NCBI GenBank assembly: GCA_964234715.1
Contig: OZ174286.1
Length of the DNA stretch: 64,000 bases
Strand: one strand, 5' to 3'
Source of the DNA: Podarcis melisellensis
Lineage: Eukaryota
The notes below the pieces were generated by a model. It was given only the letters and a program-made list of their open reading frames with translations. It had not been told where the DNA came from and did no database searches. Positions 5,809-55,838 of the stretch are shown here, piece by piece (position 1 is the stretch's first letter; each line of letters begins with the position of its first letter). The position numbers and the translations under genes were made by a program.

Positions 5809-6051
5809 CAGGGGTCAGCAACCTTTTTCAGCCGTGGGCCGGTCCACTGTCCCTGAAACCGTGTGGTGGGCCGGACTATATTTTGAAGAAAAAAAATGAA
5901 CAAATTCCTATGCCCCACAAATAATCCAGAGATGCATTTTAAATAAAAGGACACATTCTACTCATGTAAAAACATTGATTCCTGGACTGTCCGCGGGCCG
6001 GATTGAGAAGACGATTGGGCCGGCCCCTGGACCTTAGGTTGCCTACCCCTG
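5809..6051. mobile_element. Non-autonomous hAT (Charlie-like) element
   Basis: TIRs caggggtcagcaacct / aggttgcctacccctg; 8-bp TSD gcttaagt/gattaagt; gggccgg subterminal motifs. Confidence 0.85.
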
Positions 6052-6963
6052 GATTAAGTGAATGGAGTCTTTAGTTGAGCTGGTATCAAATAGGAATTCT
6101 GCATCTGGAACAGGCTCAGTTTGTTGTGTTGAAGCTCTAGTCAATGTAAACATTTTAGGATTTTGCCTTTGTACCACAGGCAGCTTTCAGCTTCTATATG
6201 CTCCAACATGTCTCTTAACAAAGAAGATAAAGTGTGGGTAGAATTGGTGGCATTATTTCAGGATAGGTGCAAAGGATTGGCCGCTTTTTAAGGATTTCCT
6301 TACTCCAAGAAACCCACACCGAAAGCTGTTTAATGTGCCTGTTTCAGAAATACGATCTTGGCAGCCTGGGGCTTAAGCAATGTGAAGGGATGTTTGTCTT
6401 GGAGGAGATGAATACAAACAATCTTTTATGAGGTATCACAGCATTTATGGTTAATGTTTTCTACTGGAGAATCCAAATGCAAGTTCTTAAGTAAGACTCG
6501 CTGTTTGTCACAGAGGTTGCTCCACATGAACTGAAATGTGTGTCAGCTCCATGCCCCTGTGAGTCCCTATAATTCATGCTAAGCCTTGTGGAAGTTGGTG
6601 GGGGTTGCAGAGAACTTTCCCATACGAATCAAGGCCTATATCTTTGTGTTTAAGAGGGAGGACAGAAGTTGAGGCGCTAGAAATTATTGTTTTAAGTGGT
6701 ACTTTGTCGTTTACATTAGCAATCCATTGCAGTTCCCCAAGGTTCAGGATCAATTCAGACTTGCTGGTAAGAAAGCAATTTAAGAGTCAGAATCTAAAGT
6801 TTTTTTTATGGCAACTGTGATCTGAATATGATCTGATATATGTGAACTTATATGAGGTCTCTGTTCATGTGGATGGTGTCTGAGTAGCTTACTCGTTAGA
6901 TTTCCACATGTTGGGAACCACCCTGAGAACCTTTGATGAAGGGCAGTATAGTAGTAGTAGTAA

Positions 6964-7314
6964 AAGGTAAAAGGACCCCTGACCCATTAGGTCCAGTCAT
7001 GACCCACTCTGGGGTTGCGGCACTCATCTCGCTTTATTGGCTGAGGGAGCCGGCGTACAGCTTCTGGGTCATGTGGGCAGCAAGACTAAGCAGCTTCTGG
7101 CGAACCAGAGCAGCGCACGGAAACGCCGTTTACCTTCCCGCAGCAGCGGTACCTATTTATCTACTTGCACTTTGACGTGCTTTCGAACTGCTAGGTGGGC
7201 AGGAGCAGGGACCGAGCAACGGGAGCTCACCCCGTCACGGGGATTCGAACCGCCGGCCTTCTGATTGGCAAGTCCTAGGCTCTGTGGTTTAACCCACAGC
7301 GCCACCCGTGTCCC
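6964..7314 (-). mobile_element. Sauria SINE (lacertid-type), full length
   Basis: tRNA-like head with a B-box (gggattcgaacc on +), typical body (ttaccttcccgc...ggtacctatttatctacttgcac), (ACCTTT) tail, and a 15-bp TSD tagtagtagtagtaa. Confidence 0.92.
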
Positions 7315-8702: not shown

Positions 8703-9113
<411 letters not shown>

Positions 9114-10949
9114 TAAGTATGAACTCTTGCAGCACCTTGGCTTACTAAAGAACAGCTGAAGAAAAACATCATAAGTCACGGCATCTTTTGTGCTGCTTGA
9201 GCAACCTATAGCAGCAGGAGAACAACTTCCTTTAGCAGACCCCTTTAAGAGGTCTCCCCATAGTTTAAAAGCAACACCCTCCTCCTCTAAATGTGGATGG
9301 GTTGATTGCAATGAGCACACTCAGTGCATGTTTAGAGGTGCTCTTGTAATGAAAATTGGCTCCAGATGACGTGATAACTTTGTGGTGTTGGTTCAGTGCC
9401 TTTCACATGACTGGAAGAATCCACACGAAAGCCAAACAATTTTTCTTACGATATGCCTTTTCTGACTCTGGTTCCTATCTGTATTTCATTTCTACTTCGT
9501 TTTGCAAAGTATCCGAGAAATTGGGATTGATAGGCGCAGGGTAGGCAAATTAGTGTCAGACTTGGCTGGACTGAAGCGTGATTACACACACACGTGTATA
9601 ATTCCCCACAGTGGACTCAAGATATCATGCCACCAGGAGGTTTTGGGGTGTCATAGCTTTCCTATCTGTGCTACCAGAAAAACACAGGGAAAGCTGCATG
9701 TGTTTTACAGGAGCCGCCTGTCTGATGGTGTGGAGCCAAAGTGGCAGTGAGGTCAAGGTTATATGGACTCACTCATGGGAATGTTGAGTTGGCTCCATCA
9801 GTGCATCAGCACTAGGATGGCTGTCCTGTTTTGCCACCTGAGACACCCTGTGCCCATCCCCACCAAAGCTTTGTTTACTGGGATTGCAATGTAACCGCTT
9901 CTGGGTTCCAGCAAGACCTTGAGAGCCCCACAAGATTTCACAGGAACCCAGAAGCTATTTATTCTCACTTCTGCAGCAGTGTCCCTTGGATTCCACTGTC
10001 CAAGGCAGCTGCCTCATGGACGGTCCAGCCCTGATCATCACAGCCCTTCCTGATAAACAGCCACATGACTTCTGCACTGATGCTAAATATGACTAATGCT
10101 AAATAGGTTCCCTTTTAAACTCGGTTTGCAAACCTATTGGAACCCCTGATTAAGAGAGGCCAACCTGATTAACAGAATCCATCGTCTGCAGTGTTGCATG
10201 TTGCAAGAAATACATTATGGTTAAGGGAGACAAAGAAAAGCTAGAGAGGGAATGAGAGAGAAAGTGTGCATCCCTGAAGGTGCTTCCTGATTTGCAAACT
10301 GAGGTGCTTAAATGTTCCATTGTACCTTTGGAAAGGTTTTGTGGTGCAGCAAAAGGGCAAGATTTACTCTTGGAATGCCTGGGGTTTATCTGTCTGTGGG
10401 TTCACTGAAGCAAAACAATCCTACTGCCTTAGCAGTGAAACTTGTAATAGGTAGCTACCAACTATTACCTATATATTTTGTTGACATTTATTCTATGAGT
10501 TGTCATTCTATAAATACTAAATCAGTGTTTCCCAACCTTTTTGGGGCAAAGGCACACTAGTTTCATGAAAAAAATCTCGAGGCACACCACCATGCCAGAT
10601 GGGGAAAGGTCACTTTTTACTTATGTAAAAAAAAATAAAAAAAATAGTAACTTCCAACGAATTCTGTAGGTCTTGTTTCTGAATCATTAAAGCTGCATTT
10701 GGGAAGGATTCGTAAGGGCGCACAGCAACTCAGTCCCACCAACTCCACAGCAGGGTTCTCAGGTTCAGTGAAGGGCTCCCTCAGGGGGGCACATATATAC
10801 ACCTGGGCTCCCGAAAAGCTGCCGCAAGAGCCCTTCAGGAGTTCACATAGCGCAGGCCTGAAGGCTGCAGCTTCCCACTTAGCATCCCGCCAGAGGAGGA
10901 AACCTCAAGTGGGCGACCTGTTTTTTCCCCCTCCCGCCTCCCTTTTGGA

Positions 10950-11900
10950 GCGCAGAGTTTTGAAGGCCGGCATCAACTCCGTTTTCCCGGATACTTCCCG
11001 CTCGAACCGAGGGCTGGGTGAAGCAAGGGCGGCGCTGCGCGTTTTACCTCCACGGCGCAGGGGCTCTGGCTCGCCTTCAGCCACCGCACGACAGCGCTGG
11101 CTGCCACTTCGTCCTGCAGCAACAGCTCCATAACAGCCGCCATGCCCACCTCTCTCCTCCTCTAGCACTACCGCGCGTGCGAGCCTCCGGGGCGGGCGCA
11201 CAAGGAGCGTGGGCGCCACCCCTCGACGCCGTCCGAAAAGCCGCCAAAAAGCCCTAAAAAAAGAGGAGCAGCAAAAAAAAAACACCACACACGGGGGGCG
11301 TGTTCTAATTCACTTCTAACTCCGGGTTAGAGCGCAGCACGTGGAGGATGGGTGGGGAAAGAGAGAGGAGGCGCACTGATAGAACGCCAGGCACGGGGGC
11401 CGCCAGGGAGAGCCAGCGCGCGCCCCGCCCCGGACGCTCGCGGCCACCGCCGTCCCTCCCTCCCAGGGAAGGCGGGATTAAAGCAAGCGCCCGGGCAGCA
11501 AGAAGCGCGCGCGCGCGCGCCGGCCCTGCCCTGGATCCCTCAGAACTGCCAGTCTCTGGGAAAGTGGGCGTGGCTTCAGAACTCTCAGGCAGCAGCGCCC
11601 GCCGCCCGGCAAGGCTTCCCATTGGGAGGCGCGAATGCTTTAGTGGACGGGGATTGGTGCAAATATAGGCAGGGCGGGCTGAGAGGAGGAGCCGCCGCCG
11701 AGGAGCAGCGGCACCAGCAGCGTTTCCTCTCCCCCCTCCCCTCCCGTGTCAACAAGCGGGGCGCCTGCGCCGGGGGTTTGCGCGTCAGGCAGGCAGCCAG
11801 GCAGGCAGACGGCGAGAGCCCCGCGCTGGGCGGCCTCTCCTCGCCGCCGCCGCCCCGCCTCTCGCCGCCCGACTCGCCCGCCTCCCTCCCACAGCACACC
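10950..11900. promoter_or_regulatory. CpG island with promoter motifs inside the hAT element
   Basis: Very GC/CpG-rich against an AT-rich, CpG-poor background. GC boxes 11189-11196 and 11423-11431; E2F-like TTTTGGCGGC on - strand 11240-11249; E-box 11338-11343; two ATTGG at 11621 and 11653; TATA-like aaatatag at 11661; NRF1-like gcgcctgcgc 11761-11770; (GC)8 at 11505-11520. Confidence 0.8.
11048..11143 (-). pseudogene. CDAN1: Captured first coding exon of CDAN1 (codanin-1) with intact splice donor
   Basis: 32 codons, MAAVMELLLQDEVAASAVVRWLKASQSPCAVE, followed by GAG|gtaaaa. Aligns with the recalled human codanin-1 N-terminus [30 protein letters not shown]. Strong Kozak context (ggcATGG). No further CDAN1 exons seen in the window. 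Confidence 0.82.
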
Positions 11901-13717
11901 AGGCAACGCCTGGCGGCACACTAGTGTGCCGCGGAACACCGGTTGGGAAACACTGTACTAAATTAAAAAGTACCAAACACTGTAAAATATCACAATAGAA
12001 ACTGGGACTGGGGTGTCCCCTTCCTGGAAGCTCCCCCCCCCCTTTTCAGTTTTTGGATTAGGTTGGAATTCTTTCTTGCTAAAAATATCCCATGGTGTCA
12101 AAAGCTTTTCACAAGTGACTGCTATGAAAGGGGATGAATTTTTTTTTGGGGGGGGGGGTAGATTGTCATAGTCTACAATTGTTGCATGCATGTACACCCA
12201 GTCATTTGATTGATGGATTTGTAATCCAAACAAAATTGCAAGTGTGGCAGTTTACACTAAGTTAACAAAAAATACTAGTGAAAGCATGTATTGGGGTGGG
12301 GGGCTTTATTCAAAATCAAACACTGCTTTATTATGGATGGGAAAGGTATGTCAACATAGAACGGAAGGGCGGGGGGGGGGGGGTTCCAGTGTCTTCTTTT
12401 CAACTATAAAATCCAGAAGAACTACTATAATCCATAAAAACCCAAATCCACAAAGCAGTTTCAGTCCTTTGCTAAAAGGCTTGATATATACATTTAATCA
12501 TCTCTAATAATCTCTCTCACAGTGTGGAAATAAAGGAAGAAAAGCACAAGTAATACTTTGAAGAATAATGCTAGTTGTTTAGATGGCAGATTGCTTCTCC
12601 ATGGCTATTAGTTACAGCTGTGTAATTACATATATACTGCAGGGAAAAAATGAATTTGTTTTAAAACAAGTCGTCTTCTGTGAGCAGAATTAATTGATAT
12701 TAACAATCCTAACTATATGCCCAAGAACATACACAATATTTTACCAGCAGTTATTTTGGATCAGTCTCTTATTAGCCAAATTGTAATTTCAGAAGAAATT
12801 GGCCTGAAGGCTAGCAATAAATCTGTGTTGCATTCTTCCTTGGGCTTGAAAAGCGGGGGACCCTGTATTTACAGTTGGAGTAGTGGGAGGGGAGAGAAGA
12901 CTTCCAGGAACTGTGATTTATTTTTCCATTGAGGTTATTTGCATCTGTTATTATTTGGATTGTACTCGGTTGCGCAGTAAAATGCATTTGAATGGTCTGA
13001 ATTGAACTGGCTCAAAGGCTTTTCTTTCTTTTTTTTGAGGACACCCCCGTGCACTCATTGCTGAAAATTCAACACTCCCTGAGAATAATAGCATGCAGAA
13101 CTGGCTTGGAAAGAAGGCCTATGGATTGCTGTGCCTTTTCTTAACCTTACAACACGAGCCTAACTAATCATGTTTACTTCAGAAATAAGTCCTGTTGGGT
13201 TCAGTGGGACTTAATCCATAGTTGAGGGTTGCAGACTCTTCTTAGGTCTGCAGACCAAAGCGAATGTGTAATGTGGCTTTCATGTTACGCTTAACATTGT
13301 CCTCCAGCTTGGGTGTGACTTGTTAGGTTCTATTCATCTCTGAGACATTCAGACATTCTATCTAACAGTAAAGCTTTTGTTGGGATGTACCCTTTCAGAG
13401 TGAAGGTGGGAGATAACATTTTTTAATATTTCCCCATTGAAAAAACTCCTTTCTAGAAAGCAAATTAGCATCTCAAGGAGAAGTGTTCAGCCTTTTATCT
13501 CACATGCTGTTCTTCTATGTGCAGGGAAGTTTTATTTGGAACAGAGGATGTTCAGATTGCTTTTCCTTACAGTGGTGCATTCCAGGAAAAGTCTTTAACA
13601 TTTTATTCTGCTGAATGTATGCATTGGCCTAAAAGATCTTCTATCTTTGTTTGAAAGTTAATTATTTCCCCTCGTAAAAATAGCAATAAACACACATCAG
13701 AAGTAAAAGGGAAAGGA

Positions 13718-15263: not shown

Positions 15264-15395
15264 NNNNNNNNNNNNNNNNNNNNNNNNNNNNNNNNNNNNN
15301 NNNNNNNNNNNNNNNNNNNNNNNNNNNNNNNNNNNNNNNNNNNNNNNNNNNNNNNNNNNNNNNNNNNNNNNNNNNNNNNNNNNNNNNNNNNNNNN
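15264..15395. other. Assembly gap (132 N)
   Basis: Run of N. Confidence 0.99.
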
Positions 15396-24935: not shown

Positions 24936-25067
24936 NNNNNNNNNNNNNNNNNNNNNNNNNNNNNNNNNNNNNNNNNNNNNNNNNNNNNNNNNNNNNNNNN
25001 NNNNNNNNNNNNNNNNNNNNNNNNNNNNNNNNNNNNNNNNNNNNNNNNNNNNNNNNNNNNNNNNNNN
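24936..25067. other. Assembly gap (132 N)
   Basis: Run of N. Confidence 0.99.
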
Positions 25068-39916: not shown

Positions 39917-40546
<630 letters not shown>

Positions 40547-45156: not shown

Positions 45157-45663
<507 letters not shown>

Positions 45664-54198: not shown

Positions 54199-54426
<228 letters not shown>

Positions 54427-55304: not shown

Positions 55305-55838
55305 CAGGTAGGTAGCTGTGTTGGTCTGACACAGTCGAAATAAATAAAAAAATAAAAAAATTGTCCAGTGGCACCTTAGAGACCAACTAAGTTTGTTCTA
55401 GGTATAAGCTTTTGTGTGCATGCACACTTCTTCAGATACTCTGAAAGAGAAGTCACCAGACCCTTATATATAGTGGGAGGGTGGGTGGGGTTTTTCTCAG
55501 AAGGGTAGTAGGAGATGGGTGATTGACTCAATGGGTGTGGTAAACCTGTTGACGACTGCAATTAGACCTACAGGAAAAAGCAAGGGACAGTATGCAGATG
55601 ACCAAAAATAGCTTTAGCATATGTAACGAGACGAGAATCCAGTATCTCTGTTCAGGCCAGGTCTCTCCATAGTTTTCAGTTTAGTAATAAGTTGTAATTC
55701 AGCAACTTCTCTTTCAAGTCTATTTCTGAAATTCTTTTGTAATAAGACAGCTGCTTTGAGATCCTGTATTGGATGTCCTGGGAGACTGAAGTGTTCTCCT
55801 ACTGGCTTCTCTGTCTTGTGATTCCTGATGTCATATTT
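55305..55838 (-). mobile_element. Penelope-like element 3' end (GIY-YIG C-terminus plus pLTR)
   Basis: Minus-strand translation KYDIRNHKTEKPVGEHFSLPGHPIQDLKAAVLLQKNFRNRLEREVAELQLITKLKTMERPGLNRDTGF, the typical HF...H...RE..E.....L.T..P.GLN tail, followed by a hammerhead motif. Confidence 0.88.
55402..55439 (-). ncRNA. Minimal type I hammerhead ribozyme motif (core-mutated)
   Basis: Minus strand GTAT-CTGAAGA-AGTGTGCATGCACAC-AAAA-GCTT-ATAC. Stem I GTAT/ATAC, palindromic stem II, GAAA box reads AAAA. Confidence 0.75.

Follow-up and report, generated by a model that had tools for sequence, protein, structure and literature searches.

A probable Pack-hAT transposon with the 5' end of CDAN1 as cargo in a GLI3 intron of the lizard Podarcis melisellensis

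Transposons with terminal inverted repeats (TIRs) that carry host gene fragments have been surveyed in animals under the name Pack-TIRs, and 370 of them were recorded in 100 animal genomes, 208 with hAT ends (Tan et al. 2021, Nat Commun 12:4280, PMC8277862). They are scarce, at about 2 per 10,000 TIR elements, and their median cargo measures 224 bp; the rare multicopy families carry GC-rich cargo, such as a 5' untranslated region (5'UTR) in Xenopus, and gap-filling and FoSTeST have been proposed as routes of capture (PMC8277862). Here, we describe an element at 10515-11963 of a 64-kb stretch of Podarcis melisellensis DNA (64,000 nucleotides of contig OZ174286.1, assembly GCA_964234715.1; hereafter the window). 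The element is very probably a non-autonomous Pack-hAT (Pack-TIR) whose cargo derives from the 5' end of CDAN1, the codanin-1 gene, and which lies in an intron of GLI3. An earlier note on this DNA had described the capture of CDAN1 by a hAT transposon and had called such events much less documented for vertebrate hATs, a wording that understates the 208 Pack-hATs on record for animals (PMC8277862).

Ends, target site and host gene

Members of the hAT superfamily are recognized by an 8-bp target site duplication (TSD), short TIRs starting with CAGTG and subterminal repeats. The element measures 1,433 bp between two copies of tactaaat (10515-10522 and 11956-11963), which form a perfect 8-bp TSD. 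Its perfect 15-bp TIRs consist of CAGTGTTTCCCAACC at 10523-10537 and the exact complement at 11941-11955; when up to two mismatches were allowed, these were the only two matches in the window, against 0.13 expected. The TIRs begin with CAGTG and, at 15 bp, fit the hAT criterion of a YARNG start and a length of about 10-25 bp. The heptamer GGCACAC was found on the plus strand at 10551, 10581 and 11915 and on the minus strand at 11924, so that 4 of its 12 copies in the window lie within about 60 bp of the ends. Furthermore, an 11-nt subterminal inverted repeat, GGCACACTAGT, pairs 10551-10561 with 11920-11930. Present near both ends, the subterminal repeats are putative transposase binding sites. 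TIRs, TSD and GGCACAC repeats were all found as the earlier note had described them.

The left hAT end (10523-10648, plus strand) comprises the TIR, an A-rich tract and two of the GGCACAC copies (10551 and 10581). This end shows no similarity to native CDAN1, and BLAST of all fetched DNA gave no source for it. The right end spans about 11910-11955 on the minus strand and holds a GGCACAC / GTGTGCC palindrome (11915-11930) followed by the TIR. From the flanks to the interior of the element, the GC content rises from about 0.35-0.45 to 0.6-0.77. Since no transposase is encoded, the element is non-autonomous. We assign it to hAT at the level of the superfamily, by the hallmarks of its ends. When the TSD TACTAAAT was set against the target consensus nTnnnnAn, position 7 was the A of the consensus and position 2 an A instead of T, a comparison of a single site with a weak consensus. 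No TIR pair beyond this one was found in the window or in the four native CDAN1 loci described below.

The empty site expected for a transposon with an 8-bp TSD, for which the earlier note had proposed a search, is present in a 6.4-kb Logan contig (L012) from a more distant lizard. This contig joins the left flank directly to the right flank through a single cACTAAAT, at the place where the window has its two tactaaat copies, and its flanks are 77-80% identical to those of the window.

Motifs of human GLI3 located in the six-frame translation placed GLI3 exons on the plus strand at 9007-9112, near 40130-40320, near 45440-45590 and near 54240-54420. The coding exon at 9007-9112 ends in PPLH, and its donor lies 1.4 kb upstream of the insertion. 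The element thus stands 1.4 kb into the intron of about 31 kb that follows this exon, with the CDAN1 cargo antisense to GLI3. We take this intron to be GLI3 intron 4 in human numbering (c.473+). Of the earlier placement in GLI3 intron 4, the host gene is borne out by exon motifs in the translation.

The captured CDAN1 5' end

The minus strand has an ATG at 11143, from which MAAVMELLLQDEVAASAVVRWLKASQSPCAVE is read; this peptide ends with GAG before gtaaaa, the donor following after 11048. Read-through of this open reading frame (ORF) meets a stop after 56 amino acids (aa), and 14 of the first 21 residues are like those of human codanin-1. ORF, donor, read-through length and human match were all reproduced as first described. 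A search of the PDB (177,635 sequences) with the 32-residue peptide returned only codanin-1 (residues 1-25, E 0.014). Against 1.84 billion representative proteins, the 56-aa ORF matched a Varanus komodoensis protein from its residue 1 (E 7.5e-5); this protein is named codanin-1 at its source and matches human codanin-1 with E 1.6e-82. A look-up of the partial Varanus protein (P0003) found no gene on record.

Comparison with squamate codanin-1, as the earlier note had suggested, gave much closer agreement. In Lacerta agilis, Podarcis muralis, P. raffonei and P. lilfordi, codanin-1 starts with MAAVLELLLQDEVAASAVVRWLKASQSPCAVE and goes on with E(S/N)QV.PKL from exon 2. The window peptide agrees with residues 1-32 of these Lacerta and Podarcis proteins at 31 of 32 positions, the sole difference being L5M. 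Codanin-1 of Zootoca vivipara is one further residue off MAAVLELLLQDEVAASAVVRWLKASQSPCAVE, and the window peptide matches it at 28-30 of 32. Judged by these alignments, the peptide is codanin-1 exon 1. A tblastn search with P. muralis codanin-1 found exon 1 alone, and no other codanin-1 exon, in the window. Three ORFs at its junctions or flanks, looked up by exact match, had no entry on record. A functional CDAN1 paralogue was ruled out, as only residues 1-32 are present, without the Codanin-1_C domain. With its 32 predicted codons only, the element is without codanin-1 function.

Two other partial proteins were noted, a 185-aa 'codanin-1-like' protein of P. muralis (P0133) and a 63-aa Logan protein (P0135), both of which cover the C-terminal part of codanin-1 only. 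The gene model of the former is separate from full codanin-1, yet falls into its 90% cluster. It may represent a second partial CDAN1 duplication in Podarcis, unrelated to exon 1.

We compared the cargo with the native CDAN1 loci of L. agilis (L013), P. muralis (L014), P. raffonei (L015) and P. lilfordi (L016). Along 10649-11786, the cargo runs colinearly with the promoter, first exon and first intron of native CDAN1 in all four lacertids. Over 10654-11786 its mismatch was 3.4% to P. muralis, 4.1% to P. raffonei, 4.3% to P. lilfordi and 6.0% to L. agilis; the stretch 10614-10653 was N-masked in the local BLAST, and the boundary at 10649 was read directly. The alignment of a snake contig (L011) likewise covers this span and shows conserved promoter blocks. 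Native exon 1 consists of 96 nt followed by GTAAAACGCGCAGCGCCGCC in 4 of 4 loci, with exon 2 about 3 kb downstream, and the donor in the window as well as 20 of 20 nt after exon 1 are identical to the native sequence.

The CDAN1-derived cargo, on the minus strand throughout, thus amounts to 1,138 bp. It comprises 643 bp upstream of the ATG (11144-11786), with the CpG-island promoter and the 5'UTR; the 96-nt coding exon 1 of 32 codons (11048-11143), in which L5M is the one change and GAG is followed by the native GT donor; and the first 399 bp of intron 1 (10649-11047). Because promoter and intron are both retained and colinear with the native loci, capture took place at the DNA level, in agreement with the DNA-mediated route first proposed.

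Two CCAAT boxes lie in the captured upstream region, which takes in most of the bidirectional region that CDAN1 shares with a Myb_DNA-bind_5 gene. The E2F-like site claimed about 100 bp upstream of the ATG is present as TTTTGGCGGC at 11241-11250 on the plus strand. The E2F-like TTTTTGGCGGC, a putative site at about this distance from the ATG, is unchanged in the cargo and in all native loci. The description of CDAN1 as E2F-regulated agrees with a passage in PMC8255688 which, citing Noy-Lotan 2009, reports codanin-1 as a direct E2F1 target. Similarly, the claimed retention of CpGs was confirmed, with a CpG observed/expected ratio (o/e) of 0.82 in the cargo and 0.81-0.86 in the native loci; the CpG counts are 93 and 96-105, respectively.

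Between a snake and lacertids, this promoter is about 65% alike except for a block of about 56 nt (GACGCGCAAACCCCCGGCGCAGGCGCCCCGCTTGTTGACA.GGGAGGGGAGGGG), which has hardly changed. The block occupies 11731-11786 of the window, 1371-1426 of L011 and about 9346-9400 of L013, some 150 bp from the ATG of the divergent Myb_DNA-bind_5 gene, and the promoter-side break point of the capture falls exactly at its edge. An Rfam search of 10660-11960 gave nothing near any gathering score, so the block is not a known RNA.

Native CDAN1 in lacertids stands head to head with the Myb_DNA-bind_5 gene and adjoins a STARD9-like kinesin gene, not GLI3; the earlier note had called it no neighbour of GLI3 in human. 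Human CDAN1 presumably also neighbours STARD9. In lacertids and the snake, CDAN1 and the Myb_DNA-bind_5 gene (368-373 aa, NAIF1-like) share an intergenic region of about 800 bp; the latter gene lies on the minus strand at 5986-9196 of L013, 1-2198 of L014-L016 and 553-1218 of L011. The STARD9-like gene was seen downstream of CDAN1 in L. agilis.

Both break points of the CDAN1 segment are sharp. On the intron side, homology stops after GGAAGTT at 10649, where the window passes into the A-rich left hAT end; the native loci and the Logan contig L001 go on with GCAAATAA, and L. agilis likewise continues with native intron. On the promoter side, homology stops exactly between 11786 and 11787, GACGCGC being preceded by GAGAGGAAAA in native DNA from snake to lacertids and by GCCTGCCT in the window. 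Beyond this point follows a second cargo piece of about 110-120 bp (11787 to about 11909, the right border being approximate) with 81% GC and a CpG o/e of 0.9. It was not found in any fetched native CDAN1 DNA, and BLAST of all fetched DNA gave no source for it. Its first 24-32 nt also occur in eight Logan contigs of a related species (L001-L008). On this evidence, the cargo is a mosaic of a CDAN1 piece and a second piece from elsewhere, and host DNA makes up about 87% of the element. The interior, first taken as captured from CDAN1, therefore has that origin at 10649-11786 and not at 11787 to about 11909.

Copies in other samples and the origin of the element

The ORF, with L at position 5, was also found in twelve Logan contigs, each from a different sample of a close relative. 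Among the ten contigs shown, L002-L004 pass from the cargo into the left hAT end up to ACATAA, L005-L010 follow the same path and end inside the T run, and the eight contigs L001-L008 begin with the junction between the second piece and CDAN1. The inner junctions are thus independent of the P. melisellensis assembly, since they recur in relatives' contigs. An Illumina adapter, CAGACGTGTGCTCTTCCGATCT, was noted at 1-22 of L005. L001 (Logan ERR14042001) enters native intron 1, where it is 98.3% identical to P. muralis; its positions 1-24 are element-specific and 1156-1563 are native CDAN1 intron.

The contigs differ from the window by 1.1-1.2%, and 9 of the 10 polarisable differences are private to the window copy, the contigs having almost none. 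This asymmetry could reflect a conserved native body, a consensus of several copies or gene conversion. A drift of about 1% in the window copy is of the same order as the per-lineage divergence of Podarcis-like genomes (1.7% pairwise in the intron), and the element is therefore not brand new. The event had been called recent: the intact ends and retained CpGs on which this was based hold, but the roughly 1% of private substitutions speak against a very young copy. The share of the stretch's sequence words present in runs was 0.74-0.81 for organism A (two studies) and 0.51-0.58 for organisms B-E; the latter values could come from an empty site as well as from about 1-2% divergence and decide nothing.

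We favor an origin in which host DNA would have been copied into a hAT copy by template switching during repair of a break or stalled fork (gap-filling or FoSTeST), because two unrelated pieces joined end to end fit template switching. Integration into the GLI3 intron followed the hAT-type cut-and-paste route, as TIRs, TSD and empty site show. That the loaded element then moved into GLI3 as a unit has, in our estimate, an even chance. A mosaic cargo would equally fit in-situ gap filling, in which a plain hAT already resident in GLI3 intron 4 was broken, for instance by aborted excision, and repaired by copying CDAN1 and other DNA, giving a single-copy element that, once loaded, never transposed. 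We consider this a substantial though somewhat less probable course. The window and the four native loci hold no second TIR-bounded copy with another TSD; yet the relatives' contigs share the inner junctions and are consensus-like against about 10 private changes in the window, which weakly fits several copies or continued activity, and GC-rich cargo is a preference reported for multicopy Pack-TIRs (PMC8277862). The CDAN1 5' end might instead have been flanked by two hAT copies and mobilized by their outer ends. This composite origin is improbable: the borders of the cargo show neither inner TIRs nor hAT remnants, hAT ends are also lacking at the break points in all four native loci, and in no native locus does the second piece adjoin CDAN1, so that the cargo is not one contiguous block. 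In its favor, hAT elements prefer the 5' regions of genes, and the cargo is a 5' gene end.

An assembly artefact, with the CDAN1 CpG island misjoined into a hAT MITE of the GLI3 intron, is very improbable. The outer junctions are indeed assembly-based, and the A/T-rich tract and the GC-rich second piece both interrupt the short-read contigs of relatives. However, the junctions of the cargo with the left hAT end and of the second piece with CDAN1 appear in independent assemblies of ten other samples, the ends and TSD are exact, the outgroup contig has a precise empty site, and same-organism runs from two studies hold the high word shares given above. We give practically no weight to a retrocopy or to the idea that a GC-rich ORF resembles codanin-1 by chance. 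Taken by itself, the human match is weak (E 0.014 against the PDB), but exon 1 agrees with the lacertid protein at 31 of 32 residues and the donor with native DNA at 20 of 20 nt. A retrocopy is refuted by the retained upstream region (643 bp) and intron 1 sequence (399 bp), colinear with native loci over 1.1 kb, and no poly(A) was found at the cargo end on the transcript strand.

Several points weigh against our preferred reading, a Pack-hAT loaded with the CDAN1 5' end. The native references come from four other lacertids, and neither a cargo-less relative nor an autonomous hAT with these ends was found in about 220 kb of lacertid DNA. The outer junctions are those of the assembly, the capture mechanism is deduced from anatomy and literature, and promoter activity is a prediction from sequence. 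Furthermore, L001 probably represents two near-identical copies collapsed into one de Bruijn path. An estimate from it of how far element and source have diverged was rejected, as this contig starts with the second piece and ends in the native intron; contigs of this sort should be used with caution when the divergence of paralogues is to be read.

Elsewhere in the window, interspersed repeats were noted at 6957-7311, 5809-6057 and 55305-55439. One, of about 350 bp, has three copies with 88-90% identity in the CDAN1 region of L. agilis (L013 2198-2540, 17150-17497 and 26647-26996). These repeats are probably a SINE or MITE family. Two N runs of exactly 132 each lie at 15264-15395 and 24936-25067.

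Meaning and comparison with known systems

The locus offers a reptile case in which a cut-and-paste transposon brought the full promoter, first exon and donor of an essential gene to a developmental gene. Such capture is raw material for exon shuffling, for antisense or chimeric transcripts and for promoter dispersal. With its intact-looking promoter, ATG and donor, this copy could give rise to antisense transcripts inside GLI3 intron 4. A literature search found no paper on such elements in lacertids. We raise, as a rather doubtful extension, that a lacertid hAT family repeatedly loads CpG-island promoters and first exons of housekeeping genes and scatters them, still rich in CpGs and with their donors, into introns of other genes. 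If true, vertebrates would have their own equivalent of rice Pack-MULEs, and both its frequency and its cargo size would exceed reported animal values by far. Lacertids would then be a vertebrate system for the acquisition of host DNA by TIR elements and could show why 5' CpG islands are preferred, a question open for Pack-MULEs too.

Among known systems, the non-autonomous Charlie/MER-type hATs of amniotes, with consensus ends of the MER5/MER20 type, presumably share with the element a TIR of the CAGTG..CAACC type, an 8-bp TSD, small size and the lack of a transposase. Ordinary members of this type consist of the family backbone only, unlike an element made up mostly of host DNA. Helitrons of vespertilionid bats (PMC4224331) are likewise vertebrate DNA transposons that take up and spread host promoters and exons at the DNA level, but they are rolling-circle elements without TIRs or TSDs and capture by read-through or end bypass. 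Pack-MULEs of rice and other plants are also TIR elements with gene fragments, which are often mosaics of several loci and come preferentially from GC-rich 5' ends (literature cited in PMC8277862); they differ as plant Mutator elements with 9-10 bp TSDs and long TIRs, whereas the present element is an animal hAT with an 8-bp TSD and 15-bp TIRs.

The closest relatives are the Pack-hATs of animals (PMC8277862), for example Pack-hAT-N8_XT of Xenopus tropicalis with 291 bp of the CAPSL 5'UTR. With these, the lizard element shares hAT ends, an 8-bp TSD and a traceable parent locus that is not a transposable element, as well as GC-rich cargo from a gene 5' end and capture at the DNA level. It differs in a CDAN1 cargo about five times the median of animal Pack-TIRs (1,138 versus 224 bp), in holding a whole CpG-island promoter, first coding exon, donor and intron sequence plus an unrelated piece, and in its lacertid host, lizards being absent from the main text of Tan et al. 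2021 (PMC8277862). The lizard element is clearly a new example of this published class and not a new phenomenon, and what sets it apart is how large its cargo is, how complete, from promoter through exon and donor to intron, and the lizard host.

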